DNA of 61,234 nt, taken from the NCBI RefSeq assembly GCF_001194135.2, contig NC_068988.1:931906-993139 (forward strand), in the 5' to 3' direction. Both the position numbers and the translations under genes were made by a program. A model generated the notes under the pieces. That model saw nothing but the letters and a program-made list of their open reading frames with translations, was not told where the DNA came from and searched no databases. Positions 22,901 through 54,818 of this stretch are shown one piece after another. Positions within the stretch are counted from its first letter, which is position 1, and each line of letters begins with the position of its first letter. Source of the stretch: Octopus bimaculoides (lineage: Eukaryota).

Positions 22901-22999
<99 letters not shown>

Positions 23000-25900
23000 G
23001 CGTATCTTTGTGTTTGTCTCCCACCACCACCTGACGACCAGTGTTGGTGTGTTTATGTCCCTTTAACTTAGTGGTTCAGCTAAAGAGACTGATAGAATAA
23101 GTATCAGTCTTAAAAAAAAAAAAATATCCAAGTACTGAGGCAGACAAAAGATCCCTTTTAACAAAGAGATAGGATAGTTGAGAGGGTAGTGGTTTTATGC
23201 GAGCTGTTGAGAGGAACATTTACAATTAAAGACTCATAGAAAGCACCCAATCCACCCTACTGGGTGGTTGGTGTTAGGAAGAGCATCCAACTGTAGAAAG
23301 AATGCCAAAGCAGAAAGTGGAGTCTGGTGCAGCTCCTGTCGAACCGTCCAACCAATGCCAACATGGGAAACAGACATTAATTGATGATGATGATACATTC
23401 ATAAATTTTGTTAATGTACCACATCAGTATTTGCAGAGCTTACTTTCAAAACTTGATATATGCATCAGAACGACACTTGGGTAATTGAGGAAATTTAGCA
23501 ACTTAAATATGTCTGATTTTGATTGGAAGACTCAAGACTTGCCTCCTGTCTATATGGCATTTATCCCAGTTTGAGTGAAAAACATTTCACGTGCGTGAAG
23601 CCAGCAGATTGTGTTTTAATGGTTGTCCCGAGATTGCCCAAATATGCTCTTGTGCCGGTTCTGAGAGTGAGCTCCTCCTTTCAGTTCTTTCCCATACTGG
23701 CACAGATTGAATGGGTTTTGTTGCATCCGTTCTCCTTCGTCCTTCGGGAATGCAAAGGGCCAACATTGTGAAGCCTGCCATGTTTCATACAGTGACGAAG
23801 CAAATTTATGATTTGGTCTTCATTTCAAATTGAAACAAAAACTTTACATTAATATTGCAGCTGTGGATGAGGCATGGATGTTTGGTTAAGACTCTTGTTT
23901 CCCAATTGTGTGGCCATGGACCCTGTCCCTCTGTGTGGCCCCTTAGTGAAGTCTCAGGCTCTCCAGGCTTTTGTAGACAGAAACTGGAAGCAGCTTGTTG
24001 TATGTACGTGTAATCATGTGATGGTTGTTTCCAACCAAACCATCACCATTATACAAGCAGTTGCTTCCAGTCATCCATAGAAAGTATGTCTGACGAAGGA
24101 GAAATATTACTTTTGCTCAGAAACAGGTGAGGGTTGGCAACAGGAAGGGCATCCAGCCATAGAAAATCTGCCTCAACAAATTCCATCTGACCCATGCAGG
24201 CAGGGAAATGTGGACATTAAAACATTGACAAATTTCTTATGATGTGGACACAAGTTCAAATTTCGTATGAAGTATTGTTAATAAAATTGATATCATTATG
24301 ATTGATCAACTTGATCTTGGTGTATTACTGGTATTTTAGGATCCCTGGAAGGTGAAAGTGACCCTGGGAGAATTTTTAATCGGGGGGGGAAAAAGAAAAA
24401 TAACTATTTTGAATTTAGGATGGTTCTATGTTGCTCTTGTTTATTAACAAGCTTCAAAAATAGTTTCATCCTATCATGTTTAAACCAGCCATTTCTGGTC
24501 CAGATATTCTGTTTTACATTCAAACTAGCCAGCTCTAGCCTCGTACACTACAATGTCATTCTCAAGATAATCAGATTACTGAAATCGCAATGATATAATG
24601 CATGACTAAAATCCCAAACAACAGGAATAAATAAGCAATCCATTTGGCAGAGTAATCTAAACCCTTGAGGGTTAAATATTGTTTGTAACGTATATGTCTT
24701 CTATATTCAGATACTGCAAGTAGCTGTCCTGATGATGAGTGGGAACAAGACTTTGCTGTGGATATCACGGAAGATGATCTAAGAAAAGCTCAAGAAGCAC
24801 TCAAAAATCTCTCCACAACTCCACTAAAAGACGTTTACAGAACATCTGGAGATATTGAGGTATTCTGTCCAAGATATTTTACTGACACACATTATTGTCA
24901 AACCCTACTTATCTTTCATCTTTTTTTTTTTTCAACATTTCCTTTATTAGCAATTATTAGGTTAATTAATCTAAAGAAATCATGCTATGAACTCTGAGAC
25001 CATTGCATCAAGCTCCATTTTTGAAGCTGTTTCTACAATTGGAAGCCATTCCTAATGCCAACCGCTTTACAGTGTATCCTGGGTACATTTTACATGGGAC
25101 TGGTTCTAGTGAAGGTCACCAACTCACAAGATATGTTTAAACTTTATGAAAATAATTATCTCAAAATTATACCTCCTGTTCAAATTGGTTTCTCTTATTC
25201 ATCAGAGTTCAGATAAACATGGAACATGGCCATTAATTGATGATGATAGTTGAATCTTTGTCTTCAATTCACTTTTCCATTCAAATACAATAGAAATTGG
25301 TTTTCTTTGATTTATTGGCAGCAACTCTATATTCTTCTTCCTCAGTATGTCACCAAACTCTTTCACAATGGCAAACATCCAAATACTTTTATTGCATCCT
25401 CCAAAACTTCTGTGCTTCCCAAAATTCATCAACAGTACACCTGATGCTCTCTACGTTTTTCCTAATGATTCCGTGTTTGCTTCCTATATAAATGTAACTA
25501 AAAGTCCCTGCACTTTTAGTTACATTTCTTAAGGAGTTGTATGCACCTGAGCACTATCCAATTTCATTATTATTATTAAGGCGGCAAGTCGTCGTTTGAC
25601 GTCCACTTTCCATGCTGGCAATGGGTTGGACGGTTTGACTGACGACTGGCAAACCAGAAGTTTGCACCAGGCTCCAATGCTTAGTGGCATTCTGCGTTCA
25701 AATTCCACTGAGGTCAGCTTTGCTTCTCATTCTTTCAGGGGTCAATGTAATCAACTGGTCTCTTCCCCAGATNNNNNNNNNNCCACTGAGGTCAGCTTTG
25801 CTTCTCATTCTTTCAGGGGTCAATGTAATCAACTGGTCTCTTCCCCAGATTCCAGGCTTTGTACCTTTGGTAGAAAGGATTATTGAGTTTTTGCTTTTTA

Positions 25901-26432
25901 AGATTCCATTGTTTTGAGATCTATTGAGTCGAGTACATCAAAATCAAATGGAAATTGTGATCCCCGTGCCGGTGGCACATAGAAAGAACCATCCAAACGT
26001 GGCCGATGCCAGCACCGCCTTAACTGGCTTCCGTGCTAGTGGCATGTAAAAAAAAGCACCAACCGATCATGACCCATGTTGGTGGAACGTAAAAAGCACC
26101 CACTACACTCTCAGAGTGGTTGGTGTTAGGAAGGGCATCCAGCTGTAGAAACACTGCCAGATCAGGCTGGAGCATGGTGCAGCCTCCTGGCTTCCCAGAC
26201 CCCAGTCGAACCGGCCAACCCATGCCAGCATGGAAAACGGACGTTAAGCGATGATGATTTGACAGAGCTGATTTTTCCATATTGATCTGTCCACTTTTTC
26301 ATTGAAGTTTATTTTGATTAATTATTTCACATAAACTATCCCATTTACCATCTAATCTTCACTAAATTAATTAATTAATACTGCTTCTTTCTTTTAATTT
26401 TTCAGGAAGAAGAATGGGAGAGCTGGGAGTAA
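5685..26432 (+). CDS. BSDC1: BSD domain-containing protein 1, 10 coding exons, 528 aa
   Basis: Join 5685-5695, 5820-5877, 7795-7911, 9505-9657, 13238-13405, 14500-14641, 18436-18819, 22318-22695, 24711-24859, 26406-26432 (1587 nt). All GT-AG and phase-consistent. Peptides FEFVKRDLAEF, DPGTYCNPP, ISELLVSN..IRALY, VSHTEFWHRYFYK, EWEQDFAVDITEDD and EEWESWE* match BSDC1. Confidence 0.92.
5820..5877 (+). CDS. BSDC1: BSDC1 exon 2
   Basis: TTTCAG| acceptor, GWFNSWIQSAKEK, |GTATGT donor. Confidence 0.88.
7795..7911 (+). CDS. BSDC1: BSDC1 exon 3
   Basis: SSTAFEFVKRDLAEFSNVIQSDT, AG/GT flanks, phase 0-0. Confidence 0.92.
8605..9190 (+). mobile_element. SINE family B copy interrupted by an RTE tail
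   Basis: Head and core 8605-8789, remainder resumes at ~9071. RTE tail in between. Confidence 0.7.
8790..9070 (-). mobile_element. RTE LINE 3' tail fragment
   Basis: CATCATCGTCGTCGTTTAACGTCTGCTTTCCATGCTGGCATGGG, reverse complement of the 3225-3270 tail. Confidence 0.8.
9505..9657 (+). CDS. BSDC1: BSDC1 exon 4
   Basis: KMQESLSHFLHGIS...YDRAQ, phase 0-0. Confidence 0.88.
13238..13405 (+). CDS. BSDC1: BSDC1 exon 5
   Basis: ARLHAIQVDPGTYCNPP...IRALYTNL, |GTAAGC donor. Confidence 0.93.
13615..13660 (-). ncRNA. Minimal type I hammerhead-like motif, copy 1
   Basis: GACAC CUGAUGA A GGCUG (10-nt loop) CAGCU GAA AUGU U GUGUU. Confidence 0.5.
13992..14037 (+). ncRNA. Hammerhead-like motif, copy 2 (G at cleavage position, probably inactive)
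   Basis: GACAC CUGAUGA A GGCUG (loop) CAGCC GAA ACAU G GUGUU. Confidence 0.45.
14500..14641 (+). CDS. BSDC1: BSDC1 exon 6 (BSD domain core)
   Basis: VPTTVSHTEFWHRYFYKIHQL contains the BSD FW signature. Long polypyrimidine acceptor. Confidence 0.93.
15720..16078 (-). mobile_element. SINE family A copy
   Basis: Same head, body and tail as 4842-5163. Confidence 0.8.
16440..16670 (+). mobile_element. RTE LINE 3' tail fragment
   Basis: GTGGTTGGTATTAGGAAGGGAATCCAGCTGTAGAAA...CAGCGTGGAAAACAG match to the tail at 3100-3270. Confidence 0.7.
17955..18260 (+). mobile_element. SINE family B, full-length-looking copy
   Basis: A-box TGGCTCAGTGG, B-box GAGTTCAGTTC, central TCCTTGAGCAAGTCACTTTATTTCAC block. 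Confidence 0.8.
18436..18819 (+). CDS. BSDC1: BSDC1 exon 7 (acidic linker)
   Basis: CCAG| acceptor, open frame, TCAG|GTACAT donor, phase 1-1. Low complexity, so homology support is weaker. Confidence 0.78.
19084..19129 (-). ncRNA. Hammerhead-like motif, copy 3 (U16.1 mutated, degenerate)
   Basis: GACAC CUGAUGA A GGCUG (loop) CAGCU GAA ACAC U GUGUU. Confidence 0.4.
19528..19573 (+). ncRNA. Hammerhead-like motif, copy 4
   Basis: GACAC CUGAAGA A GGCUG GAGGGUAUAU CAGCC GAA ACAU U GUGUU. Confidence 0.55.
20702..21597 (-). mobile_element. 5'-truncated RTE LINE spanning an N-gap
   Basis: Minus strand 21597-21309 translates to FRYLGDQVSSGGGC...RIAWAKFRELLPLL...LYDACVRTAMLHGSETW (RT C-terminal region). 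The same family's tail is at 20702-20933. Confidence 0.88.
20934..21308. other. Assembly gap. Others at ~25773-25782, 37524-37664, 41342-41351, 47478-47487, 48774-48950, 58042-58111
   Basis: N runs in the sequence. Confidence 1.
21739..22014 (+). mobile_element. SINE family B copy
   Basis: Matches 17955-18260. Confidence 0.75.
22318..22695 (+). CDS. BSDC1: BSDC1 exon 8 (Ser/acidic linker)
   Basis: TTGTAG| acceptor, open frame, AAAG|GTAATT donor, phase 1-1. Confidence 0.78.
22744..23115 (+). mobile_element. SINE family A copy with expanded (CA)n at 22904-22997
   Basis: Head GTGGCTAAGTGG...GGGTTCAGACCC, internal AC run of ~47 units. Confidence 0.78.
24711..24859 (+). CDS. BSDC1: BSDC1 exon 9
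   Basis: DDEWEQDFAVDITEDDLRKAQEAL matches the BSDC1 C-terminal motif. Confidence 0.9.
25915..26258 (+). mobile_element. RTE LINE 3'UTR and tail fragment
   Basis: Subrepeats plus CATGCCAGCATGGAAAACGGACGTTAAGCGATGATG. Confidence 0.8.
26406..26432 (+). CDS. BSDC1: BSDC1 exon 10 (EEEWESWE*)
   Basis: TTTTCAG| acceptor and conserved terminal W-E-x-W-E. Confidence 0.9.
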   Translation, partial: EEEWESWE

Positions 26433-26460
26433 AACTTATCATTTTATGTATGTATATAAC

Positions 26461-26466
26461 AATAAA
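26461..26466 (+). terminator. Candidate BSDC1 polyadenylation signal
   Basis: AATAAA about 30 nt after the stop codon. Confidence 0.4.
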
Positions 26467-27501
26467 TACACCACTATATAACAACTGTGACTGCTTTCGT
26501 TGTTTGGAACACTGAAAAACACCTGGCTAATGTATATATTATTTTTACCAGATGATAAACAACTGATCCTTCAATCTAGTTTCTTATTTCTTTACTCCTG
26601 AATTCACAAATATTGCTTTTCCATAATAGACTTAAAATGTCATGGCTTTTGGAGATTTCATGAATACTTGACATTTATCATATTCCATATTATTTTTCAG
26701 ATTTGCATCTCTTTGCATTGAACTCAAACACCTGTGATTCACAATGATCAATATAGATATTGAAAGTAAATGGTTTGATCAGTCTTTAGTACTTATTTCA
26801 GACAGAGATACATAGACATTAACATAAATCATTATTGTTAATAGGAAAATTAATTTCGTTGTTTTCCTTGCTTGCTTAATTTGTATAATGCAGAATAGCC
26901 ATAGATTTTCTTTAGCAAACCACCTGTGTTTTACCTTTTATCATCTTTTTAGCCCAGTTATAGGCAAATTGCAGCCATGCCAAATCAGAGTGGAGTCTGG
27001 TGAAGCCTTCCAGCCTTGCCATCCCAGTCAAACCGTCCAACTCATGCCAGCATGGGCAATGGATGCTATATAATGATTATATATATATATATAATGATAT
27101 ATACATAAGTCTACTAGACATCAGTTTTTCTACCGGGATTTTCTATTCATGCATGCACACACAATGGGCTGCTTTGAAATTCACTCACAAGGCATTGGTC
27201 AGTATGGAGCTATTGTAGAAGACGCTGGTGCTTTCACTGTTTCCAGTTGCCTGGGTGTACAAGTGCAAGCAGTCAGATACCCTTTTGCCCCCCCTCCCCA
27301 CACACACACCTATATATATATTCAAGATGCAACAACTGGAGAAATAAGAGAGCTACACGAGCACCAGGGTTGTTCCTCATTTACAGCTGAGTAGACTGTG
27401 GCAACATGATATGCAGTGCCTTTGCTCAAGGACACAACATGCAACTCAGTCCTGAAATTGAACTGATGTTATCATGTGTTGAACACCTTAACCACTACTC
27501 T

Positions 27502-28816: not shown

Positions 28817-31800
28817 TTATTTTGGATTTTTGGAAAATAATTTTTTCTTTTTTTTTAAATTCCAAGAATTAGCAGGTTTCTTACTTGGAATGGTCATGTA
28901 ACCATCTGGGTGGACACTGTCCATGTAAGCAAGTGACCGATCATAAATGTATAACGGATGTTTAGGGTTGGTATATCTCTGGTCATCGTATGCGTAACAG
29001 GGTGGATGTTGTGATTGTGGTTCTTTGTAAAGATACGTGTCAGAAATCGCATCATCATATATAAATTGCTCTGTCATTATTTTATTCTCAAAGATTGTTG
29101 GCATCACTTGAGGGTCAACTGGTCGGGATACAGTTCTGGGGAATCTTGACTGAAAACTCTGGGTTCTCAGAGGAAATTTTCTGATGCCATAACTTAAATC
29201 ATCCATTGAGTAATTTGGTTTAAATCTATCAAATGGACTTCCCCATAAATAATTAGTTTCTCTTGCCAATTTCTCTCTAAACAAGGAATTATTTAATTCA
29301 TCAAAATTATTTGCATTGCTTTTATTCTCAGCAAATTCTAACCCTTTTGACTGGGCTGACACTTGCCAATTCTTAATATCTTCTTCTGAAATAAAATCTC
29401 CAACATAAGATGCTTTGGCGTCAGCATAAATATTCGTGAGTTTTTTCTGATATTTACCTGTCAATGGCAACTTTGAAGAATTATCGTCTCCAGCATCATA
29501 TATTCTCTGATCTGAACAATGTTTTCCAGACTTATTATTCGTATTAATACTTTCTCTAGAACATTCCTTTCTCTCTGTAGCTAAAGGCTCCAAAACGGTC
29601 AGATCTTTGAGATGTGAAAGTTTCTCTTTCTGACAAACTCCTAAAGTAATTCCTTTCTCTTCAAGACCCATTTTCTCCTCTTCGTTATTACATTTCCAAT
29701 CAATATTGGGTTGTAATCTGCCACTACAGGTACCGGATATCTCACACCCAGAACTGTTTTCACTTTCAGATTCTTCTGATTGGTGCAGACTGTTTCGGCT
29801 GTTACCAATATTATTTCCATCAACATCTTTTCTAATTGATTCATTTACACCTTCATTACAGTTATTCCGATTAATTATTGGAATTTGGTCACAACTGACT
29901 CGAGGCATTTTCTGTAAACTTGCATCTTCTCTAAAATGTTTCTCAGCAGCCATCGTCGAACCATCTTGTATAAGATCTTTGGTAATATTTCTCTGTCTGG
30001 ATTTTTCAGAGAAGGCTTGGGTGCTCCCACTGAAACTGGAAGTATGGTGGTCAGATATTCTAGACAAATGGTCCAGTACATCAAGAGCCCAGTCACGATC
30101 ATCTGTAGTTCCAAAATTTGAAGAATTAACCTCATTATCCTTTTCAACATCCTCATCGTTATCCGCAAGATAATTACTTGATAGATTTACTCTTGCTTTT
30201 CTATCAGTTAACGATGTTTCATTTTGCACTTCTTTCGCAGAAATTTTCCCTTCTTGAAAATCCTTAACGTTTTCAGTGTTTTTATCTTCTAAATATTTCA
30301 CCTTTACCAAATTACAAGCAGCTGTGTCACTTTTCACCTCATCCAGTATATCGTTTGCACTCCGCCACTTTTTCCGATCAAAGAGATCGATGCTGCGTCC
30401 AAATTTGAACGGAGAATTAACAAAAGTTTGAATACGAAGTGGGCTTAGTTTGTCTTTTAACTTTGATAAACGGTTTTTATCCATAATGCTTATTGATTGA
30501 GATCGACCCAGCTTCAGAGGAGAATTCTTCAACTGTTGAATTGTTAAGGGACTTAAACGGAAAGCTTTGTTTAGTTCTTCGGATTTTATTTTCTCTTTAG
30601 GGAGATCTTTAGGAACTTGGGGTCTTCTAGGCTGTTCTTCAATGTCAGATTCACACAAAGAATTTGGAGAACAGCTAATAGGGTCTTCGTTATGATTCAG
30701 TGTTTTGGATACAATGGTATTATGGGAATCAGAATCATCAGAATCAGGTTTCTTAAACTCTTGGAATATTTTTGCATCAGTTCCATCTAAATTTTCATGA
30801 TTTTCCTGAAAACTGTTGGAATATTTCTTCTCTCGTGTTACTTCTGTCTTGCATACCTCCTTAGCAATTCTACCAAAAGATATACCTGCAACTGTTCTCT
30901 GTTCTTCATCAATAATTTCTTGGTTCTTTGTCATATTTTCTTTGATTCCTGGAGAAATTGGACTAATTGTGATTCCAGAATGAACGTGTAGGGACATTTT
31001 TTTTAATCTAGTCAGGTTTTGAGGAATGTCTTCCTCATTTGTTGTTTGAGATTTTGTAGCCTCAACCTCGGTCAGCTCGTGTGAAGAATCGACTTCCTCG
31101 GATGTTGATTGACTCTTCAACGATTCCATTTCTGACTTTAGATTATTTGTTTCAGAATTCAAACAATTGTCCAACGCTTCCAAATGTTTGGCTGCTTTGT
31201 CTTCGGCCGATCGAGCATCACCAACCGAATCTGGGAAACTGGAAAGTGAAGTAACAGAGGTTGTGTCCGTATCTGTGTCAGTTGAGTGGGAGGAGTTGAA
31301 CGGAACCGACAGAGACCGTTCTGGAAGATATGGATGCTTACAACTGAATAGCGGAGACTGATTGCTGTTAGGTGGGACACTAGGAAGCGCAGGTGTTGTC
31401 CTGTAAGACGGGCAGATTGCTGCAGCAGATTTTATTGTTTGAGAATCTGGAGGAATGGATAGATTGAAATCAGAATAAACAGTAAATTGTCCACGTGATA
31501 AACAACGATCATCGGCAATTGATTGAGTGGCAGTCATTGATCTTTGCCCTTTATTATAATTACAGTTCATACCTGGCATCACTGAAATCTCAGTACTTTG
31601 AGCATGCGGGTAGCTCTGGGTTTTACCATGGAAAGTGTAATCAGCTGGAACTGACGCTGGTCTGTTTGAAGACTCACCATATTGGGAGTAACATTCTTGC
31701 TCTTTGGGAGATTGATTTGGAATCACAGAAACCGATCTTACAGGAGACATGGTGAGATTTCTTAAAGCTTCTATACTGGTTACTTTATCTGGTGGCACCG

Positions 31801-33631
31801 ACATGGATTGCACTGGTGATATGGTCAGCTGCCGGAAGTCGTAACAATCTGTCTCGGTAGCATTATTAGAACCATAAGTGGTTGACCTGGGTGGAATTTT
31901 TCTGAGATTTTTGAAACTCGCTCTGAAGAGATTTTCATTTGGTGGAGCACTTTCAGAACGTCTCGAAGAAATAGTACAATACCTAAAGTCATGATCGACA
32001 ATTGGTTCTTTTGGGTTATTTTGCCTGGAGAGTACGGTTCGGCCTCGTAAGGACCCGTAATTGGCTGATGGGTTTGGTGGTGCTGACACACATCTCTTGG
32101 CAGAGGGTCTGTCACTGTACACAACGTACGTGCGAGCATCGGAGGGTGGTTGCTGCTTGCAGTTGTATTCAGGGTGGACATTAGCTTCGTCATAAACACC
32201 ACCCTCATGGCAAGGGGAAAAAGCTGAAGAACAAGGATACTGGCTAATGTAATGGCTTGGTCTGTATGGTAATGTGCGATACGGAGCATGGCTAGGCACT
32301 TGTTTACAGCTGTGAGGATCTGCAGTGGAGAGATTCCTCAAAGCCTGATTGTCATTTAAAGTGTTTAGATTTTCAAGACTTGTAGCTTTACGTATTTGGT
32401 ACGATGCTGCATTCTCCATCAAATTACTGTGGGAACAGTTTTCAGCATAGGACATTCTTTTGTGAGAACAATAATTGTTACAATTAGTCATTGGATTGTA
32501 ACACTGTTGACGATTAAGACAATGAGCTGGCTCATTATAGACTTGATGACATGGAGGTCTTTGAAGGTAACTTTGGTAAGTAAATTCTTCTGAATTAGAA
32601 CTGTGTACTCTTGGGTTACGTATGTCATAGAATCTCCCAGCATGGTCCCTTGGATAATGACGCAGTTCACAATTTGGCCACGGATGACCTTGCTGAAAGG
32701 AACCCGATTTTGGATCTAGAGTCTCTTGGTTTGTGCAATACTGACCTGGATTTAGAACTGGGGACATTTCTTTGTAAGTGGGAGTCTTTATAGCATTCAA
32801 ATGACGGCGAAAGGAAGACCGTAATCGTGTTAAGGGACCTTCCTTGGTTTTACATTCCATTGGTTTCGTGGTTGGTTGGTAAACACTATTCAAATAGGTG
32901 TACTTGGCTGGTTTATTGCCAGGGTCACGATATTTTTCAAGCATTTCAAGATAATGGTCAGATCCTTCCCTGGATTCCTGCCAGTTGTGGTATTGATCAG
33001 AAAGATTATCCAATGTCGAAATGGAGGAGGATTTGACATTTTCACTATGATGTCTTGCAAGAGGACGTCTCCCTTTTGTTATATGGCACACTGGAGAAAT
33101 GGTTACGTTTGGCGTCTGAGATATTTGAGGATAATAATTGGGATGGATTTGCATCTCAGATGTAGCACTCATCAACTGTGCCTTTGATATGCCGTCTTTG
33201 AAATCGCCAGATTTATTACATTTCAGTTGGCACCTCAGCGAACCATTTTCTGCATCTTCCTTCCTTTTATATCTATCTACAGTCAAAGAACCGTGCTTTA
33301 TTTTCCTTTTAATAGATTTGGAACTGTAAGGAGTAACTTCTTCATCAATAACAGACGAGGTAAATATTTTATTTGTGCTAGGTTCGTTCGGTCTTTCAGC
33401 GTATGTGGAGTCATCAAATAATGTACCTTGGTTGACAGCAGGGGACACGCTGCCAGAAATACTGGGACTGCTACCATTGCTGGAGAAAAAGTGTATGTTA
33501 TCACTCATCTTGGAATAACAACCAATTGGATCTTCTCGACAAGGATACACACTCGAAGTATGTCTGATGCTGCTGTCAATTATATGTTTGTTCATTAACG
33601 ATCGATTGGATGTGAGCGATGATGAAGAAGG
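28817..33631 (-). CDS. XKR: XKR terminal exon, 4815 nt, 1604 aa low-complexity tail
   Basis: Stop-free 4.8-kb frame in ~65% AT DNA. Acceptor TTTATTTCTCATTACAG|CCT is phase 0 and matches the phase-0 donor at 35267. Confidence 0.8.
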   Translation of the reverse strand, partial: PSSSSLTSNRSLMNKHIIDSSIRHTSSVYPCREDPIGCYSKMSDNIHFFSSNGSSPSISGSVSPAVNQGTLFDDSTYAERPNEPSTNKIFTSSVIDEEVTPYSSKSIKRKIKHGSLTVDRYKRKEDAENGSLRCQLKCNKSGDFKDGISKAQLMSATSEMQIHPNYYPQISQTPNVTISPVCHITKGRRPLARHHSENVKSSSISTLDNLSDQYHNWQESREGSDHYLEMLEKYRDPGNKPAKYTYLNSVYQPTTKPMECKTKEGPLTRLRSSFRRHLNAIKTPTYKEMSPVLNPGQYCTNQETLDPKSGSFQQGHPWPNCELRHYPRDHAGRFYDIRNPRVHSSNSEEFTYQSYLQRPPCHQVYNEPAHCLNRQQCYNPMTNCNNYCSHKRMSYAENCSHSNLMENAASYQIRKATSLENLNTLNDNQALRNLSTADPHSCKQVPSHAPYRTLPYRPSHYISQYPCSSAFSPCHEGGVYDEANVHPEYNCKQQPPSDARTYVVYSDRPSAKRCVSAPPNPSANYGSLRGRTVLSRQNNPKEPIVDHDFRYCTISSRRSESAPPNENLFRASFKNLRKIPPRSTTYGSNNATETDCYDFRQLTISPVQSMSVPPDKVTSIEALRNLTMSPVRSVSVIPNQSPKEQECYSQYGESSNRPASVPADYTFHGKTQSYPHAQSTEISVMPGMNCNYNKGQRSMTATQSIADDRCLSRGQFTVYSDFNLSIPPDSQTIKSAAAICPSYRTTPALPSVPPNSNQSPLFSCKHPYLPERSLSVPFNSSHSTDTDTDTTSVTSLSSFPDSVGDARSAEDKAAKHLEALDNCLNSETNNLKSEMESLKSQSTSEEVDSSHELTEVEATKSQTTNEEDIPQNLTRLKKMSLHVHSGITISPISPGIKENMTKNQEIIDEEQRTVAGISFGRIAKEVCKTEVTREKKYSNSFQENHENLDGTDAKIFQEFKKPDSDDSDSHNTIVSKTLNHNEDPISCSPNSLCESDIEEQPRRPQVPKDLPKEKIKSEELNKAFRLSPLTIQQLKNSPLKLGRSQSISIMDKNRLSKLKDKLSPLRIQTFVNSPFKFGRSIDLFDRKKWRSANDILDEVKSDTAACNLVKVKYLEDKNTENVKDFQEGKISAKEVQNETSLTDRKARVNLSSNYLADNDEDVEKDNEVNSSNFGTTDDRDWALDVLDHLSRISDHHTSSFSGSTQAFSEKSRQRNITKDLIQDGSTMAAEKHFREDASLQKMPRVSCDQIPIINRNNCNEGVNESIRKDVDGNNIGNSRNSLHQSEESESENSSGCEISGTCSGRLQPNIDWKCNNEEEKMGLEEKGITLGVCQKEKLSHLKDLTVLEPLATERKECSRESINTNNKSGKHCSDQRIYDAGDDNSSKLPLTGKYQKKLTNIYADAKASYVGDFISEEDIKNWQVSAQSKGLEFAENKSNANNFDELNNSLFREKLARETNYLWGSPFDRFKPNYSMDDLSYGIRKFPLRTQSFQSRFPRTVSRPVDPQVMPTIFENKIMTEQFIYDDAISDTYLYKEPQSQHPPCYAYDDQRYTNPKHPLYIYDRSLAYMDSVHPDGYMTIPSKKPANSWNLKKKKKLFSKNPK

Positions 33632-36600
33632 CTGTAATGAGAAATAAATCGATATATATAAATATAGACATAATCTCAATATAAACTAATAAAACACTTG
33701 TTAATTAACTTTTGTGATGGTAACTTATTAAGTTCTCTCACAGACTTGTGTTAATCTTTTTGTTACCATATTTCTGTAGAAATACACATACTTTATTTCA
33801 ATTAATTTTGAAAATATTAGTTTCAAATTCTGGCTTTTCATTATATCAAAGCAAAATGCTCACCTTACACTTGTTTTATCAATCCTGAAAGGACAAAAAG
33901 CAAAGCTGACGACCATGCTGGAGCACCGCCTTTAGTCGAACAAATCGACCCCAGGACTTATTCTTTGTAAGCCTAGTACTTATTCTATCAATCTCTTTTG
34001 CCAAACCGCTAAGTTACGGGGACGTAAACACACCAGCATCGGTTGTCAAGTGATGTTGTGGGGACAGACACACGTACACTTATATGATGGGCTTCTTTCA
34101 GTTTCCGTCTACTACATCCACTCACAAGGCTTTAGTTGGCCCAAGGCTATAGTAGAAGACACTTGCCCAAGGTGCCACGCAGTGGGACTGAACCTGGAAC
34201 CATGTGGTTGGTAAGCAAGCTACTTACCACACAGCCACTCCTGTGCCTACATGAAAGAAAATTACCAGAGAACTTTCATCTAATTCTTCCAAATCTTTCT
34301 GTTAAAAGTGTATTGAAACAATTTGTGGGGAATTCTTTTTTTATCACAGCAACTGGTTGCGCACCACAAGGTTTAACAGAATCTACTGAACCAAGCCAGC
34401 ACGCTTGCAGCATTACCACGAGCAATGGAAAGGCTCAGGCATTGGAAAAGCCAAAGCACCCTCACAGGCATCACCTGACACCTAATGAAGAATAGAGTAA
34501 AATAACTTTGTCACTATTAAGCTAAGGTTTGGAACATAACATGAAATTTTAGTGGGAAATTTTAATTTAGATCGCTTTAGAACTAGAAGCTTATATCGTA
34601 AAACCAGGAGTGAGGCGGCCACAGGTGGGAGTTTGGTGTCCAAAAGATTAAATTAATACCTTTTCTCGGTGAAAGGAAATATTCTCTATCAGCTTCAAAG
34701 GTTGAAAACCAAGAGAACTTTCAATGCGCACAGTCTTTGACAGTAACAGCCAATGTTTTTTTTTTTTTTTTTTTTAGGCAGAATGATTTGAGAAGAATTT
34801 CACTGCTATTTCTGGCAGATCATGCAACTGCATAGAGGTCTTCCTAATTGGATTGTTGAGTATTTCATTAGCTTGGTTTGTTAAGCTCAAACTAATTGAG
34901 AAAATATCTGGTCAAATATAATATCACAGGTGAATTCTTGCAGACAGTGAAATAAATGAGCTTAGCACTGAAAATGGGAGATGAGGGCCACTACACTGCA
35001 ACACTTTTTAAACAAAAGAGGAAAGAAACATACATTTGATTTCAAATCTTGGCACAAGGCCAGCAATTTTGAGGGAGAGAGTCAATTACATTGACCCCAT
35101 CTGGTACTTATTTCATCGACCCTGGAAGGATGAAAGGCAAAGTCAACCTCAGCGGAATTTGAACTCAGAACGTGAAGAGGGATGAAATGCTGCTAATGAT
35201 TTTGCCCAGCAGGCTAACGAGTCTTGCCTTGGAAAGCAAAATGTATTTGAAAAATTCACGAGTTACCTTGGCTCTTTCTATTCTGGCAATAGTTTTATCT
35301 TCGGTTGATGTACAATCCTCTAGGGAATTGTTTTGGTCAGGATGGAAGCAACAATAAAATAAGAGCAAACAGACCACTCCTACAGCAGAAAAAAACAGTA
35401 AAATTATATATATGATGGAACAAAAACAATAGAGGACAATAAAACATCTGGACAGACAGGAAAAACAACTATTAGAGGGACAGGAGAAAAATGACAGGTC
35501 ATTCGTAGCCTTCTTTCATCAGTCAAGTTACCAGATGTCCTTACAGTTTCAGGCAGTTACACTTGAGATCTTCAGTTTGGTTGCCCCCAAAAAAGTCTCA
35601 GCTAAGAGCATTAGATTTTTTTGTATATATATATATATATATATAAAGATGTTGGAAATAGCACAATGTATGCAACAATTAGTTATGTATTGTCAAGATC
35701 TCATTAAAGATTTGAAGTTTTCATAAATATACATAAAAATATGATGCGTATATAATTTGCCCAACTTCTGACATTAATTTTAAAAAATGAATTATCTTTT
35801 GACGAAGATAATAATGATGTTAGCCTGGTGATTACTGTGGAGAAAAATACGACAAATACTTCTGCCTAAAACAACAAAATATGTTATAGTCTTTCAGTCA
35901 GTTTTAGAATGACTGGATTATAGAAATCCCTTGAATTTAATTTGTTTAATCCCCTCTTCATTCAGCAGATTTGGGATCAAAAACATTAGAGCAGCCCCTA
36001 AAGGCCACTTTGTCATTTGTTTGCAACAAATTTTTAGGAGGAAAAATTCCTGTATTTTAAGCCTTGTAACATTCATGTCTCTCCAAACGAGATTCATAGA
36101 CTTATTCTATAATGTATCTCTGGCTAAGACAATTTTTATATTCTGTTGAACAGATGAGGAAGCACTACTTGAGAAATACCCAAACATTTTGCATATGTGA
36201 TGCACTTTTTAGAAATGAAATTTTCCAAGACACATTACAAAAAAAAACAAAACAAAAGGGAGAGAGAATTCACTCAGGTATATCTGTGTGGTAAAGAAGT
36301 TTGCTTCTCAACCACATTGTTCCAGGTTCAACACCTTGGACAAGCGTCTTCAGCTATCATCCTGGGCTCAACAGTGTCAACGGGAAAGGGATAGTCAATG
36401 CTTTCAACTCCAGTACATGACTGGTACTCCAAAAGGATAACTGGCAAAGTTGACCTTGACTGGATTCAAACAGAGAATAAAGAACTGGTAGGAATTCCAC
36501 AGAGCATTTTGTCTGATACTCTGCAGATTCTATCAGCTCGTTGCCTAAATAACAACAACAATAATAATAATAATAATGGTTTCAAATTTTGGCACAAGGC

Positions 36601-37721
36601 CAGAATTTTAAGGGAGGGTTAAGTTGATTACATTGACCCCAGTGTTCAACTGGTACTTATTTTATCAATCCTGAAAGGATGAATGACAAAGCTGACCATG
36701 GCAGAATTTGAACTCAGAATGAAACGCCAAACAAAATTCTGCCCAGTGTGCTAACAATTCTGCCAGCTCGCTGCCTTAACCATCGCTTCAAATTTTGGCA
36801 CAAGGCCAGCAGTTTTGGGGGGAGGAGGTAAGCTGATTACATCAATCCCAGAATGCAACTGGTACTTTATTTTCTCAACTTCAAAAGGATGAAAAACAAA
36901 GTTGTTGACCTCAGCAGAATTTGAACTCGGAACATAAAAACAGAGGAAATGCCACTAAGCATTTTACGTGGGGTGCCAACAATTCTGCCAGCTTGCTACT
37001 TTAATAACAATAATAATAACAACCAGTGTCTCACCTATGAGAAATCCTGTAAAGACAAGAGCTGTAAACAGCCACTGATATGCTTCCGCGATATCAATTG
37101 GAGTCAACAACCAGGCGATAACTGCAAGAGAATTCTCCAGTAAAAGCAGGGCATAAAAGAAGAGCAGGCGCCAGCGGCCAGAACCCTTTTGAATTTGTAA
37201 GAAAGAAAAAATGTAGATGAATCCAACGACACAGGAAAGTAACTTGTCTTGCCACCAAACACTGCTTAGTTTTGGTTTCTCAGCAATTATCCACAGACTC
37301 ATCAACATCCAATGAACTCCTATAGGAAAGAAAAGTTTGGAAGAATAGAAATATTCTTAGTAAATTATTGTGTTTAAAATATGTGTAGAAACTGTACTGA
37401 TAGATATATATATGCACAAACTATGCATGTGTGTGTGTGTATATACATGAAGACAGGTGTATAAACAACAAATAGATGTATTAGTTTAATGCTTGGGAAG
37501 TAAGAAAGTCTTTTACGTTTCGANNNNNNNNNNNNNNNNNNNNNNNNNNNNNNNNNNNNNNNNNNNNNNNNNNNNNNNNNNNNNNNNNNNNNNNNNNNNN
37601 NNNNNNNNNNNNNNNNNNNNNNNNNNNNNNNNNNNNNNNNNNNNNNNNNNNNNNNNNNNNNNNNTATATACACACACACACACACACATCTTGTGATTCC
37701 GAATTCAATTCCAGGCAGTGA

Positions 37722-37756
<35 letters not shown>

Positions 37757-40700
37757 TCGAAAAATACCTTAGGAATGAGAACGCAGGTTCGAAATTTCCC
37801 CAAATTACCTGATGAAGGCTGGAGGGTATATCAGCCGAAACATTGTGTTAACAACAAACAAGATGAGGACAAATATCCATCAAATGTAAATAATAATGTT
37901 TGTTGTGGTTGTGGTGATGATCAATCTTATCTATAGAGCCTTCTCATTTCTCAACTGCTCAAACTCATTCTTTTTCCCATTTTACCAAACGAGTCCTACA
38001 TTTGTTTTATCTATTTATCCTGATTAAGACAGCTTCACAAAAGTTAATTACGTCCAGGTAGTTTCTCTAAAACTAATTATAGAGATTTGGTAATTAAATA
38101 TTACAATTAGGTGTAATGTTGCCCTTCCAAAGCTCATTTAGCTCAATGAAATGAGTTTGCACAATTGAACAATAATATGAAAGGAGCATGAGTCATAAAG
38201 CACGCTTCTATATGGTCATTCAGTCAGCTAGAAATAACAGCAATAGTTCTCTCAACATCTCATTGCTTTACAAAATGGAGGGCATGTTGTGTAACATAAG
38301 CTAGACGTACGAAAGGATAGGATGTCATTTATGGTGGGTGCTTCTGTGTGATCAGTTTATTTACTAGAAATAGCAGTAACACCATCTTCAAATTATGCTT
38401 GAGGTAAAGTTGAAGATCATCAGACACTGGTGTTTCAACCTCATTTGGTTTCTTCAGTGATGAAACACCCACTGGACATTCTAAGCTCAGCTGAAAGAAT
38501 ATTCATTTTGGTATAGAAATTAGTAAACAAAGCATTCAAGATTTGCATGAAAGCTGGCCAGGCTTGAATTAAGTCAATACATACACAAGAAACAGCCCTT
38601 GATTAAAATAATGGTGCGTTTAACAGTATTTTTATTGACATAAAATGATGATAGTTATATTTTGTCCCAAAGAAACATCTAAAAGAAACTTGTGTATTAT
38701 ATTCCCACAGAATTCTGAAGATGGTTTGATAAAAAGCAAAAGAGTTTTGAGGTCAATTGTGTGGAGAAATTCTTAATTATCTAAATACTTTTAGATTCAG
38801 ATGAAAAGATCAGAAATAAGCCAAATATAACAAAGAATTAAGTTTGATATACAGAAGAAAATATCAAAGGAGAAAGAAATTGATTCATAATACAAGGGAA
38901 ACATTGTGTTCCTGAAAAACTTGCCATAACATGGAATTCTGTAACAAGAAATTTATTTCCTGTTGACTTCCAGGTGACATAAAAATCAAAGAGCTTGGAA
39001 GTGAATGGGAAATTAGTTTTTCATCACAAAATTCCACAATACAGAAAGATTATCAGGAACGTAATGCTTTGATAAACACAAAGAAATACTGGTATTCTTA
39101 CCTATAGCAAAAAAGATCCAACTCTTAAAACAAAAAGCAAACAATATAATTGCCGCCACTCTGGATAATGTCATTCCAGTCTGCCAACCAATCTGTAGCA
39201 GAAAACTTGGCCATTTTGGACGAGGAATATTTCGAGATTGAAGTCGGAGATTGTCGGAGTATGTTACAAAGCCCCAGGAAAACGATATGAGAGAAATTAT
39301 TAAAGAAAAACCTGGAAACATAAATAAATAAATAATGATAACATGTATATTAATATCTTTTATACACACACACACAATATACATCAAGGGTTATGATATC
39401 GAAGTTGTGTTCTCATGAATTTTTGTCAAAAGAATTACAGGTAAGAGAGTCTATACATATATTTTCAATAAAGATTATTTGCCAACATAACATGGCAGTC
39501 CTGGTTTAGAATGAATGTTGCTGTAATTTAGCCTCAGGAAACATCGTCTCCAGCTGGCTATATGACACGATCTGTGTCCTTATATTTTTGAACAAGAGAA
39601 TCTAGCATCCCCACTCAGCTCAAAACAATATCTGTGTATCGCCATTCCTGGGTTATTTCTCTTCATCGCGATACACAGATATTGTTTTGAGCTGAGTGGG
39701 GGTGCTGGATTCCCTTGTTCGAAAATATAAGGACACAGATTGTTTTGTATAGCCAGCTGGAGATGATGTCTCCTGGGGCTAAATTACAGCAATATTCGTC
39801 CTAAACCAGGACTACTACCATGTTATGTTGGCAAACAATCTTTACCACAAAGTACTGTCGCTGAATATCTCACGTTGTGAGATTTAAAAATAGTAATTTT
39901 CTAATGTCTTGTTAACATCTACCTTTGTAACTTCTTTCCTGTAATGAAACGTGTAACATGGAATTAAAAATGTACCAAATTTTTCCAGTCTTTTGTTTTG
40001 ATTATATATATATAAATTTAATTAGAGGGTGTGTTAAGCTCATGAAGGAATGGTTTCATCCAAGGAAATACTGGTTCAATACCCAGTATTTTGGAGGAAT
40101 GGATTTCTTTAAAATAATAGGTATATATAAAAATATATAGTTTATATAAAAGAAGAAAATGGAGACTGGAAAGTTAATAATTGTTTATTATTAACAGCAA
40201 ATTGGTCATCTTCACTATATTCTTAGTGGTGTGAATATACCACAAAACACTTTTAAATGTATTCCCCAGTGTTGATATATATTTGCACAGAGCGGTCCTC
40301 AGTATCCAAAAAGGTTAATCTCATCATCATCATCGTTTAACGTCCGCTTTCCATGCTAGCATGGGTTGGACGATTTGACTGAGGACTGGTGAAACCGGAT
40401 GGCAACACCAGGCTCCAGTCTGATTTGGCAGAGTTTCTACAGCTGGATGCCCTTCCTAACGCCAACCACTCAGAGAGTGTAGTGGGTGCTTTTACGTGTC
40501 ACCCGCACGAAAACGGCCACACTCGAAATGGTGTCTTTTATGTGCCACCCGCACAAGCCAGTCCAGGGGCACTGGCAACAATCTCACTCGAAAATCCTAC
40601 AGGAGCCAGTCAGGCGGTACTGGCAACGGCCACGCTCAAAATGGTGCATCTCATGTGCCACCCGCACAAGAACCAGTCCAGGGGCACTGGCAACGATCTT

Positions 40701-41292
40701 ACTTGGCTTGCCGGGTCTTCTCACGCACAGCACATTTCCAAAGGTCTGTTTGTTAAAACTATATGATTACAAGATTTAATATATTTTTAAAGATAGATTA
40801 AAAGAAAATATTTCTGGCAATATATTTCCAGTCAGACTAACCTGTCCCTGCAGATCCATGCCAGGTACTTAGAAGCACATAGGACTGAAGAATTAACTGT
40901 GGTGCTGCTTCAAGGAAAGTTTGAAACAGCCGAAGCAGAAAAGCACTGTGGACTTGCTGGAATAATTTCTCAAATCGAAGGGGATCAGAGGTTGTTTTCA
41001 ATTCACTCCAAGTTAATAATACATCAGCGTACCTGGAAACAGTAACAAGATCAAATTGGATTTTCACATTTCATTTGAAGATGACAAGTAATTTACTTGT
41101 CTCAGTCATTTGACTGTGGCCATGGTAGAGCACTATCTTTAGTCGAACCAATTGACCTCAGGACTTATTCTTTGTAAGCCTAGTACTTATTTTATCAATC
41201 TCTTTTGCTGAACAGTTAAGTTACAGGAACGTAAACACACCAACATCGGTTGTCAAATGATGATGGTGGGGGTGACAAGCACAGACACATAC

Positions 41293-41341
<49 letters not shown>

Positions 41342-44300
41342 NNNNNNNNNNAGGCTTCTTTCAGTTTCTGTCTACCAAATCCACTCACAAGCCTTTGGTC
41401 AGCCCAAGGCTAGAGTAAAAGACACTTACCACGGAACGGGACTGAACCCGGAACCATGTGGTTGGGAAGCAAGCTTCTTACCACACAGCCACGTGTGGGA
41501 AGCTAAATTAGTAACTTGGGCGATGTTATTAGGTAGTTCTCTTTATAACAATGAGGTTATGGATCCAATCCCATTTGCTCAGTTCCAAATCGTAGATTGA
41601 CCAATACCTTATGACTGAAATTTGATAAACAGGAATTGTATGGAAGCCCATTACATAAGGCAATGGCCAATGGTGTAGAGAGAGAGAGAGGGTGCCACCC
41701 AAAGCAGTCCTTTACTTTGCACACCACCAAGCTCTCAAGCCTATACAAACTTATACAGCAGACCCAAAAGTGGGCCCCATATCACGGCTGTGGTGCTTAA
41801 GAATACCTAAGAAGCCCATTATTCATGACTGTGGTGCTTTAGAAATTCACTCAAGTATGTCATTTTCGGTTCAGTCTTATTGTATACCACCTTCAGGCAA
41901 GAAGTGTCTTTTCCTATAATCCTGGGCCAGTCAAAGTTTCTAAGTGAATTTGGTACACATGATAACATGGCCGCAGTCAAATGACTGAAACAAGAGAAGA
42001 CAAGAAATCTGGAAAAAAAAAAAGTGCTTTGTAACTGAAGTTCCTTTTGATATTTGTTCTACAATGGGTTATAGATTCTCCCTTGTCATTTTCAAAATTA
42101 ATTAAAACAAAAGCACTGCATTTCAACAGAAATATCATAACATAACAACAAACTTATTAAAGATATCCAACTTCCTTTTCCATGTAATCTAAAAAGTGAT
42201 TAAGTAATACTAAATCCTGGTTTGTGATTTTTAATTTCACCTTCTTTCTCCATTTTCTTTATTTCGAACACCAACAGGAATTAATGAACTAAGCAAATGA
42301 ACTGAATAAACTCAACATTAAAAGAGAGACAAAGAAAACAATTTAGAATTTCAATAAAATTTCAGAGATTTTTTTTTTATTCAGAAAATGTTCTGAATAA
42401 ATATTTCACAGCAAAATGGAAGCAAGAAACTAAAATATCATTAGAAAATATTTGAAAGTCAACTACACAAGTCTAAAAAAACTAAAAGTTATATAACAAA
42501 CCACATGACAACAACAAAAAAAAAATATATAATGTCTCCACTCGAGTGATGTCACTCAACAAGCTCCAAATAAAACTAAATAGATGTAATTTTCCTTGAA
42601 ATTACGTCCAACCTTTCAGGGTAAAATGTGAAAGTGGAGCAACATATTTGGTTTCTGATGCTTTGGAAGACATCAAGAGAAGAAAGTAGAGTAATTGGCC
42701 ATCATTAAGTTTACATTCCTGTAAACTGGTTACAGAGATTTTCATAATTTATTCAATAAAAGTTACAGTCCCTTATTCTAAATGAATGTTTTAACATCAG
42801 ATTTTACAGCTTTCTATGATGTTTTTGTTGTTGTTGTTCATAATTTTAAATCAAGGAATTTCATTCATGTCACAAATACTAAGTAGAAAGATCTGAAAAA
42901 TAAAACCTCCATGTTTATTTTAAGCATGACTGTGGTTAGAAGCTTGCTTTCCAATCACATGATTCCGGGTTCAGTCCTGCTGCATGGCAACTTGGGCAAG
43001 TGTTTTCTATTATAGCCTCAGGCCAACCAAAGCCTTGTGAATGGATTTAGAAGAGCAGAAACTGAAAGAAGCCTGTCATATATACATATGTGCGTGTCTG
43101 TTCCCCCACCACTGCTTGACAACCAGTGTTGTGTTTACATCTCCATAACTTAGTGGTTCAGCAAAAGAGTCTGATAGAATAAGTACTTTAAAAAAGTACT
43201 GGTGTTAATTGCCCCAGCATGGCCACAGTTTAATGAGTGAAACAAGTAAAAGAACTGCAAATTTATGCATCGAAGTTCAGCTAAAGTCAACAGTTTTGTC
43301 ACCCTATTTCTTTTGAAATAACATCGCCTTTCTTTCAATTAATTGTTTAAATAAGGAAGAATTCATTTAATGACTTTGTCGTTATTAAACTAGCATTTGG
43401 AAGCAGTGAGCTGGCAGAATCGTTAGCAGAATCGTTAGCAGAATCGTTAGCACATTGGACGAAATGCTTAGCAGTATTTCATCCGTTGTTATGTTCAGAG
43501 TTCAAATTCCACCGAGGTCAACTTTGCCTTTTATCCTTTTGGAGTCAATAAATTAAGTACCAGTTGTGTACTGGGGTCGATGTAATCAACTAGTCCCTGC
43601 CCCCACATTTCAAGCCTTGTGCCCACAGTAGAAAGAATTATTAATCGAGCATCTGGAGCATAAATTAACATGAAATTTTGATGAAGGTTTAAATTTAGAT
43701 CACCTTAAAACAGGAAGTTTATATCATAGAACCAGTGGGGGTGGTCTCATGTGGGTTGGTATCAACAGAGTTAAATATCAATATGAACCTCTACAATGGT
43801 TCTCTAATAGACTATGGAATTAAATTTTACATTTGAAGATAATTTAAGAACATCAGCATCAATGACTATGATATAACGAGTTTAGTGGTCTCTTTTTGCC
43901 AAACCACTAAGTTACAGGGATGGGAAAAAAAAGCAACACCAGTATCATGCACTGGGGGTAGGGAACAAACCCACACACAAAACAAGCTTCCACAGTTTCC
44001 ACCTACCAAATTTACTAACAAGGCATTAGTTGAACAGGGGCTATAGTTAGAAGATAATTGTCCAAGATGTCACATTGTGGGACTGAACCTAAAAGCACAG
44101 GATTTCAAAGTGAGCTGCTTAACCACACAACCATGCCGGTACCTTCAACATTTTCATAAAGTTTGACATTTTTATAAAATTTTTCTTATTCTCTAGAAAT
44201 TTATCAAGATAGAAATAACGTGATAAAAAAGATCCTTACCGTTTTATAAGAGCAAGTCCAATAAAATGAAGGAAACCAGAAATACAACTTATTTTTATAT

Positions 44301-44448
44301 TTCTCTTAGTCAACAACCACTTCAGGCTGAACACTTGAATGCAGACCATAGGAACCACCACAAAAGCCAAACTCAAAGAAAACCATATCAGTCGTTCCTC
44401 AAACATGTATTGTATAACGACAACGACATCTGAAAGAGAAGCGAAAAA
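28817..44448 (-). CDS. XKR: XK-related protein (XKR scramblase family) with giant C-terminal tail, 5'-partial, 1940 aa from the exons found
   Basis: Join complement 44448-44240, 41032-40842, 39311-39102, 37319-37035, 35379-35267, 33631-28817 (5823 nt, open, GT-AG, phase-consistent). XK motifs: SDVVVVIQY, QVFSLKW, FLEAAPQLILQ, SRVAAIILFA, HW, ENSL, FYCCFHP. Paralogue cannot be assigned. Confidence 0.85.
33912..34250 (-). mobile_element. SINE family A copy
   Basis: Well-preserved match to 4842-5163. Confidence 0.82.
35038..35230 (-). mobile_element. tRNA-derived SINE, family C
   Basis: Reverse complement of the 43399-43645 type (GAGTTCAAATTCCGCTGAGGTTGACTTTGCCTTTCATCC). Confidence 0.75.
35267..35379 (-). 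CDS. XKR: XKR exon (last TM helix end, FYCCFHP)
   Basis: TTTTTTTCTGCTGTAG| acceptor, AAG|GTAACT donor, phase 1-0. Confidence 0.85.
36414..37001 (-). mobile_element. Three adjacent SINE family C copies
   Basis: Copies at ~36414-36547, 36575-36777 and 36787-37001, all in the same orientation. Confidence 0.72.
37035..37319 (-). CDS. XKR: XKR exon
   Basis: GVHWMLM...VGFIYIFSF...FYALLLLENSL, |GTGAGA donor, phase 1-1. Confidence 0.9.
37695..37898 (+). mobile_element. Single 5'-truncated copy of the Penelope-like repeat
   Basis: B-box remnant, (AAT)n, hammerhead-like motif and tail as at 19400-19620. Confidence 0.8.
37804..37849 (+). ncRNA. Hammerhead-like motif, copy 5 (stem I weakened)
   Basis: AUUAC CUGAUGA A GGCUG GAGGGUAUAU CAGCC GAA ACAU U GUGUU. 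Confidence 0.45.
39102..39311 (-). CDS. XKR: XKR exon
   Basis: SLISFSWGFVTY...LSRVAAIILFA, |GTAAGA donor, phase 1-1. Confidence 0.9.
39471..39842. mobile_element. Palindromic MITE, ~172-bp arms with 25-nt spacer
   Basis: 39471-39642 is the imperfect reverse complement of 39668-39842. TA on both flanks. Confidence 0.75.
40321..40746 (-). mobile_element. RTE LINE 3' end (last codons DLWKCAVREKTRQAK*, UTR, tail)
   Basis: Matches the end of the 2335-2652 ORF and the (GAT)n tail. Confidence 0.85.
40842..41032 (-). CDS. XKR: XKR exon
   Basis: LRLFQTFLEAAPQLILQSY signature, phase 2-1. Confidence 0.92.
41093..41492 (-). mobile_element. SINE family A copy (10-N gap in its TA run)
   Basis: Family A head and tail. 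Confidence 0.8.
42925..43260 (+). mobile_element. SINE family A copy
   Basis: Family A head, body and tail in + orientation. Confidence 0.75.
43399..43645 (+). mobile_element. SINE family C, full-length-looking copy
   Basis: A-box-like TGGCAGAATCG, B-box GAGTTCAAATTCC, shared 3' body. Confidence 0.78.
44240..44448 (-). CDS. XKR: XKR exon (most 5' coding exon found)
   Basis: FFASLSDVVVVIQY...WFSLSLAFVVVP..QVFSLKW...FLHFIGL, CG|GTAAGG donor. Begins at an acceptor, so a start exon lies further upstream. Confidence 0.88.
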
Positions 44449-54656: not shown

Positions 54657-54818
54657 TAGGCACAGGAGTGGTTGTGTGGTAAGAAGCTTGCTTACCAACC
54701 ACATGGTTCCAGGTTCAGTCCCACTGTAAGGCACCTTAGGTGAATGTCTTCTACTATAGACTCGGGTCGACCAAAGCCTTGTGAGTGGATTTGGTAGATG
54801 GAAACTGAAAGAATCCCA

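Follow-up and report, generated by a model that had tools for sequence, protein, structure and literature searches.

We analysed a 61,234-nt stretch of DNA from Octopus bimaculoides (contig NC_068988.1, positions 931,906 to 993,139, in assembly GCF_001194135.2), which we call the window. (Unless noted otherwise, positions are counted from the first nucleotide of the window.) On its minus strand, the window contains exons 2-7 of LOC106872646, a member of the XK-related (XKR) family. The last of these exons encodes an unusually long C-terminal tail. We identified the exons by searching over AG/GT boundaries, which yielded one chain: six GT-AG exons, running from 44429 to 28817, whose translation matches residues 29-1962 of XP_014775197.1 residue for residue. 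(XP_014775197.1 is “uncharacterized protein LOC106872646 isoform X1” from O. bimaculoides; we refer to it as P0006.) The coordinates of the exons are given in Table 1.

We then examined the junction between the membrane domain and the tail. Exon 6 ends with the codons ATT GCC AGA ATA GAA AGA GCC AAG, followed by the donor gtaact at 35267, in phase 0. The acceptor for the terminal exon is ttctcattacag, and this exon opens with CCT TCT TCA at 33631, also in phase 0. This is the junction in the RefSeq model, and a first-pass annotation of the window, made from the letters alone, had proposed the same donor, acceptor, and phase. The terminal exon lies within an open reading frame (ORF) on the minus strand, 28817-33679, which has 1,620 codons if counted from the upstream stop. 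Counted from the acceptor at 33631, there are 1,604 sense codons, which reproduces the size that was first reported. (Given the base composition of the window, a run of 1,604 codons without a stop would arise by chance with a probability of around 1e-47.) The first-pass annotation had also put the C-terminal tail at about 1,630 residues, and indeed the FYCCFHP sequence at the end of the last transmembrane helix lies at about residue 334, while the protein ends at residue 1962.

The first exon (residues 1-28 of P0006; MSTGRDFHSQDV...) was not found in the window by pattern or by permissive tblastn. It is missing because intron 1 is so long: this intron spans 42 kb in O. vulgaris, and collinearity places the O. 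bimaculoides exon about 15 kb past position 61234. RefSeq also has X2 isoforms for O. bimaculoides and O. sinensis (P0004 and P0005). These begin at MFEERL inside exon 2, so the first 36 residues are missing, and with them part of the first helix, but the full tail is kept.

Next, we considered the membrane domain. Four of the exons in the window match the Pfam family PF09815 (XK-related) with E values of 1e-11 to 1e-14, and together they cover positions 3-329 of the 337 positions in the profile. An orthologue from another cephalopod (P0010, described below) matches positions 3-337 (E = 5.4e-80), and PF09815 is also in the precomputed annotation of P0001 and P0002. When we compared the octopus protein to the Protein Data Bank (PDB) with phmmer, the best match was human XKR4 (9boj_B; E = 5.4e-41; residues 13-336), followed by XKR9 and XKR8 (7p14_A, E = 8.3e-21, and 7dce_X, E = 1e-19) and XK (9yg5_D, E = 2.3e-4). 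Judged by these scores, the octopus membrane domain is nearest to vertebrate XKR4. As a member of the XKR family, the octopus protein would be expected to be a phospholipid scramblase. A word-indexed protein search with the XKR domain alone found nothing, but it missed even the O. vulgaris protein, so this gives no sign that relatives are absent. Similarly, a word-indexed search with full-length P0006 found only two octopod clusters; its prefilter evidently fails to reach other XKR proteins.

Is the tail the usual end of the protein? The long form could be just one isoform, with the main XKR product stopping soon after exon 6 (by intron retention or alternative polyadenylation) and with the tail as a tissue-restricted alternative terminal exon, for instance in neurons. 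Read-through of the exon-6 donor leads to a stop after 32 codons, there are ATTAAA and AATAAA hexamers within intron 6, and alternative terminal exons are common. However, the 32-codon read-through is a copy of a repeat, which argues against its being coding; AT-rich sequence would contain such hexamers by chance, and those in intron 6 lie a long way from the donor; and the isoforms annotated in O. bimaculoides and O. sinensis (X1 and X2) are all long. We think it unlikely that the main product is the short one. As for the repeats themselves, they make up most of intron 6 (for example, at 33890-34260 and 35080-35262), and one copy begins a few bases past the exon-6 donor. They belong to families with at least 15 and at least 7 copies in the window, at 72-82% identity (other copies are at 54654-55019, 4895-5173, 41120-41492, and 43440-43586, for example).

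We have several pieces of evidence that the XKR domain is joined to the tail. First, a word-indexed phmmer search with the tail alone found three protein clusters. The Octopus cluster contains O. vulgaris CAI9727358 (“XK-related protein 6”), two isoforms from O. sinensis, and two from O. bimaculoides; the second cluster is GAB1600182 from Argonauta hians; and the third, from Logan assemblies, is about 38% identical to the octopus tail. (An exact look-up of the tail-only product, from its first methionine, found no record.) The GenBank or RefSeq models for four octopods (O. bimaculoides, O. sinensis, O. vulgaris, and Argonauta hians) combine XKR with the tail. In these models, PF09815 is N-terminal and the junction reads ...ARIERAK-P[ST]SSSLTS....

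Second, a more distant cephalopod provides both a transcript and a genomic sequence. Contig L003 (from run SRR8281677) is 6,588 nt, has no introns, and includes a 5' untranslated region. Its single ORF encodes 2,148 amino acids (P0010): a complete XK-related domain and then the tail. Contig L001, from a different run, is genomic, and it matches L003 at 99.85% identity across 5,404 nt, with no gaps, starting exactly at position 1185 of L003. Upstream of the match, L001 reads ...ttttctttttttttctttggatattatag, which is a polypyrimidine tract and a tatag acceptor, while L003 has XKR coding sequence there. This comparison is direct evidence of a spliced XKR-tail mRNA, with the splice at the position homologous to 33631.

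Third, the 12 codons of the tail exon that precede its first ATG are conserved as protein. The octopus sequence is SSSSLTSNRSL, and that of the distant cephalopod is SSSSITSNTSL (the pattern is SSSS[LI]TSN.SL), and several codons differ only synonymously (TCG/TCC, ACA/ACT, AAT/AAC, TCG/TCT, and TTA/CTG). Because these codons are kept as protein despite synonymous changes, the start of the exon must be translated.

Fourth, O. vulgaris, Argonauta, and L005, which is a contig from a further cephalopod (ENA ERZ21867824), likewise have a phase-0 acceptor and one large terminal exon. In L005, the tail exon is preceded on the same strand by XKR exons, at distances of 4 and 8 kb. (The source animals of L001/L003 and of L005 are presumably decapodiforms.) At around 11600-11625 of L005, inside an RSESAPP motif, the tail exon breaks into two ORFs, of 572 and 1,169 amino acids. 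The frame shifts there by one base, within a run of C, and both halves are open, so this is probably a long-read homopolymer error or an assembly error rather than a pseudogene.

The first-pass annotation had favored the fusion but had named an alternative: the 4.8-kb ORF might be an independent intronless gene, in which case the fusion to XKR would be an artefact of gene prediction. In support of this, there is a conserved in-frame methionine 13 codons past the acceptor, and a prokaryote-style gene caller, when run on Logan contigs, reports the tail as a stand-alone ORF (P0003). But an independent gene does not explain why L003 has XKR and the tail in one ORF behind a 5' untranslated region, or why it departs from L001 exactly at the acceptor. 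Nor would a start at that ATG explain the conservation, as protein, of the codons before it. Also, the phase-0 AG acceptor and its polypyrimidine tract are kept in five loci, the frame opens a mere 16 codons upstream of the acceptor, and the XKR exons are always upstream and on the same strand. Given the transcript and genomic pair, the conserved acceptor, and the coding sequence before the ATG, we consider an independent gene to be very improbable and we rejected it. The fusion that was first proposed stands, with the junction in the models of four octopod species, in the single ORF of L003, and in the conserved codons before the ATG.

We then asked how the tail evolves. At the DNA level, O. 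bimaculoides and O. vulgaris share 92.7% identity in the tail exon, versus 84.7% in intron 6. The tail exon has 0.148 synonymous substitutions per synonymous site (dS), 0.038 nonsynonymous substitutions per nonsynonymous site (dN), and a dN/dS ratio of 0.26. For comparison, the XKR domain has dS = 0.161, dN = 0.020, and dN/dS = 0.12. Across 200-codon windows of the tail, dN/dS ranges from 0.15 to 0.67. All of the insertions and deletions in the tail exon between these two species are in frame, and the exon is single-copy within the window. These comparisons indicate that the tail is under purifying selection and is a real, translated part of the XKR protein.

To our profile of the tail (residues 1-1200, from four lineages), we compared all 1.84 billion representative proteins, scoring each with HMMER. 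Exactly three proteins matched, all with E < 1e-169: one is the Argonauta orthologue, and the other two are the halves of the L005 orthologue. There was nothing weaker among the 1.84 billion. At the level of sequence, the tail appears to be confined to cephalopods; the first-pass annotation had called it lineage-specific, and the exhaustive search returned only cephalopod orthologues or fragments of them. Within the cephalopods, the tails from L001/L003 and from L005 are about 40% identical to the octopus tail and about 62% identical to each other. That the tail is a functionless ORF derived from a transposable element or a repeat, domesticated or decaying after its capture as a terminal exon, has next to no probability in our view: the flanking introns are full of interspersed repeats and the tail has no recognisable domain, but it is single-copy in the window, has no Pfam match related to transposable elements, occurs as a syntenic orthologue, with an open frame of 1,500-1,800 codons, at five or more cephalopod loci, and combines a dN/dS of 0.26 with highly conserved blocks among lineages that are about 40% identical overall.

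The tail is rich in serine (13%), asparagine (7.5%), lysine (7.2%), and proline (6.7%), in line with the Ser-, Asn-, Pro-, and charge-rich composition described at first. It has no match to any Pfam family at E ≤ 1 and none to any sequence in the PDB at E ≤ 1 (the PDB includes full-length human XKR4), and the first reading of the sequence had recognised no domain either. The highest 19-residue mean of Kyte-Doolittle hydropathy is 0.6 in the tail versus 2.65 in the membrane domain, which indicates that the tail has no transmembrane segment. In AlphaFold2 models, residues 1-1200 of the tail have a mean predicted local distance difference test score (pLDDT) of 28.8, with no residue reaching 50, and residues 1201-1604 have a mean of 36.5, with 16 residues between 50 and 70. 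The models contain just a few short helices, which are located at conserved blocks. All of this is consistent with a tail that has no stable fold and is disordered, as had been suggested at the outset: there are no Pfam or PDB matches, the pLDDT is below 50 almost throughout, and there is no hydrophobic segment. A BLAST comparison of the tail to itself found no internal repeats at E ≤ 1, as its repeated motifs are too short.

An alignment of the four lineages has about a dozen conserved blocks, separated by fast-evolving linkers of Ser, Asn, Pro, and charged residues (see Table 1 for the blocks). Two kinds of short motifs are overrepresented. The tail contains five instances of R..[ST].P, versus 1.1 expected (P = 0.005, 20,000 shuffles), and six of S[AV]P[PAF], versus 0.16 expected. 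Each of the five R..[ST].P positions is retained across the four lineages, although the arginine is replaced by glutamine at the fourth site in Argonauta and by lysine at the fifth site in the distant cephalopod. We take these putative sites to fit the 14-3-3 mode-1 consensus and the basophilic-kinase consensus. In contrast, near the last helix, no caspase-type site (DxxD) is conserved across the four lineages. The only DxxD in all four sequences is DLFD (P0006 residue 1440), which is followed by arginine; DVLD (residue 1542) is present in three of the sequences and is DVLN in Argonauta. Both lie in conserved blocks that are far from the membrane. We also tried to read the conserved blocks as FFAT motifs, as LC3-interacting regions (LIR), or as SxIP motifs, and dropped these readings because of a poor fit to the motif or no conservation. 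Separately, an otherwise disordered region contains an invariant Cys/His cluster, C-x3-C-x-H-x8-C (NCNNYCSHKRMSYAENC; P0006 residues ~742-757; window ~31360-31410). This could be a small metal-binding knuckle.

How does the octopus protein compare to better-studied members of the family? In XKR8 and XKR9, a short C-terminal helix keeps the protein inactive until caspase cleavage or phosphorylation, and this C-terminal gating involves caspase cleavage or phosphorylation at three sites (PMC12334663, PMC10938166). XKR4 has a longer, dynamic tail, with distal cleavage, and cellular partners that are as yet unknown are suspected (PMC12334663, PMC10938166). That XKR4's tail is longer than those of XKR8 and XKR9 is from the paper describing the XKR4 structure. 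The literature thus agrees with the precedent that the first-pass annotation had cited, namely that XKR8, XKR4, and XKR9 are regulated through their C-terminal tails (PMC12334663, PMC10938166).

XKR4 (in the XKR4/6/7 subgroup; PDB 9boj) shares with the octopus protein a D-x-x-T-D motif in the first helix and a conserved FLE-APQL-LQ. However, XKR4's long N-terminal extension and large loop insertion are absent from the octopus protein, whose tail is about 1,630 residues instead of about 130, with no detectable similarity between the two tails (PDB search, E ≤ 1). XKR8 and XKR9 (PDB 7dce and 7p14) belong to the same XK-related fold family (E = 1e-19 to 8e-21). Whereas their short helix plugs the cavity and is cut off near the membrane, the octopus protein has a 1,600-residue extension, predicted to be disordered, with many conserved motifs. 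The octopus tail is also reminiscent of a general class of long disordered tails with multiple 14-3-3 sites: it has clustered and conserved RxxSxP motifs, it is Ser-rich, and it has little predicted structure. This resemblance is of motifs only.

Overall, an XKR4-like membrane domain is spliced to a constrained tail that is predicted to be disordered, and we think it likely that this tail acts in the cytosol as a regulatory and docking platform. By homology with the C-termini of XKR4, XKR8, and XKR9, the extension would be cytosolic. Basophilic kinases might phosphorylate the conserved RxxSxP and SxS[AV]PP sites, 14-3-3 proteins or other adaptors might then bind to the phosphorylated sites, and binding might tune the scramblase's activity, its localisation, or its recruitment of partners. 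The tail would then be an enlarged counterpart of the short C-terminal tails that gate XKR8, XKR9, and XKR4 via caspase cleavage or phosphorylation. We favor phosphorylation-dependent binding of partners because there is no conserved caspase-type site near the membrane and there are many conserved Ser-Pro motifs. We are much less confident in the specific 14-3-3 mechanism than in the picture of a regulatory platform as a whole.

Several caveats weigh against this picture. The gene models for the octopods are computational predictions, and the evidence at the transcript level comes from the distant cephalopod. A short isoform that ends in intron 6 may exist, and since the first methionine of the tail exon is conserved, there may be an additional, tail-only product from an internal start. 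We infer all of the scramblase activity, the cytosolic topology, the phosphorylation, and the 14-3-3 binding of the octopus protein. The AlphaFold2 alignments had four sequences, so the low pLDDT is weak evidence of disorder. Finally, the exhaustive profile search covered residues 1-1200 of the tail; for the last 404 residues, the only search was the word-indexed one with phmmer.

The phosphatidylserine that XKR scramblases expose serves as an “eat-me” or pruning signal, and these proteins are controlled through short cytosolic tails. The octopus tail has about ten times the length of XKR4's, and it is conserved and selected in octopods and in two distantly related lineages of cephalopods. This makes it a natural experiment on how disordered extensions might rewire a membrane lipid transporter, and a clean case, among cephalopods, of a coding exon that is restricted to a lineage. 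It also offers defined, conserved motifs that can be examined for tail-dependent gating, localisation, or binding of partners. A more ambitious proposal, which we regard as doubtful, is that coleoid cephalopods evolved a caspase-independent control of an XKR4-like scramblase. The 1,600-residue disordered arm in the cytosol would be a multi-site phospho-switch and a scaffold, and lipid scrambling would be linked to signalling or to partners, perhaps in neurons, through its clustered 14-3-3-type sites, its two LSPLxIQ..NSPxKxGRS repeats, and its highly conserved PRTVSRPVDP..MTEQFIYDD block at the C-terminus. If this is true, it would be a mode of XKR regulation without a counterpart in other animals. 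The gene model itself is already in RefSeq, GenBank, and UniProt, as “uncharacterized” or “XK-related protein”; what is new is its verification and characterisation. Our search of the literature found no paper on XK-related proteins in octopus.

Table 1. Exons of the XKR gene, conserved blocks of its tail, and gaps in the window. In the blocks, a dot stands for any residue.
Feature	Position	Strand	Remarks
Coding exon 2	44240..44429	-	P0006 residues 29-92; PF09815 E = 1.3e-11; first coding exon within the window
Coding exon 3, XK-related domain	40842..41032	-	Translation match, Pfam
Coding exon 4, XK-related domain	39102..39311	-	Translation match, Pfam
Coding exon 5, XK-related domain	37035..37319	-	Translation match, Pfam
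Coding exon 6	35267..35379	-	End of the last transmembrane helix (…LLLFYCCFHP) and 24-residue linker to IERAK
Intron 6 (1,635 nt)	33632..35266	-	Interspersed repeats; 84.7% identity to the O. vulgaris intron
Terminal coding exon	28817..33631	-	1,604 codons and TAA stop; entire cephalopod-specific tail (by sequence)
Full S-x-S-[AV]-P-P / RxxSxP cluster	~31150-30206		P0006 residues 852-1167; approximate, from residue numbering
Example block, start of the S-x-S-[AV]-P-P / RxxSxP cluster	30986..31102	-	Tail ~844-882 = P0006 1202-1240; approximate
Tail block			KYTYLNSVY.PTTKPME.K.K..PLT.LRSSFRRH
Tail block			C..C.HKR.SY.ENC
Tail block			YVVYSD.PS..R..SAPP
Tail block			DFRYCT.SS.RSESAPP.EN..RASFK
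Tail block			YDFRQLT.SP.QSM.VPPDK
Tail block			LRNLT.SPVRSVSV.P
Tail block			Two tandem LSPL.IQ....SP.K.GR units, then IDLFDRK.WRS.NDI
Tail block			DWALDVL..LSRISDHH
Tail block, near the C-terminus			P.TVSRPVDP..MPTI.E.K.MTEQFIYDD
Assembly gaps	20934-21308, 37524-37664, 48774-48950, 58042-58111		
10-N runs	25773, 41342, 47478		

The rest of the window has a few other features. Scans of the window with Rfam and for tRNAs found nothing. The flanks of the 10-N gap at 47478 are near-duplicates, with the same ORFs at 47162-47390 and 47401-47621, which suggests either a duplication artefact of the assembly or a tandem repeat. On the plus strand, the region around 21736-26976 is collinear with a BSD-domain gene (PF03909) of O. 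vulgaris, which is convergent with the XKR gene. On its own, the plus-strand ORF at 22302-22706 has no Pfam match; it probably belongs to the BSD-domain gene. Also on the plus strand, two adjacent ORFs at 293-1509 match a PIF1-like helicase (PF05970, E = 6e-48) and the Pif1 2B domain (PF21530), and the first of them ends in a run of lysines (poly-A). These ORFs are probably the remnant of a Helitron-type transposon.

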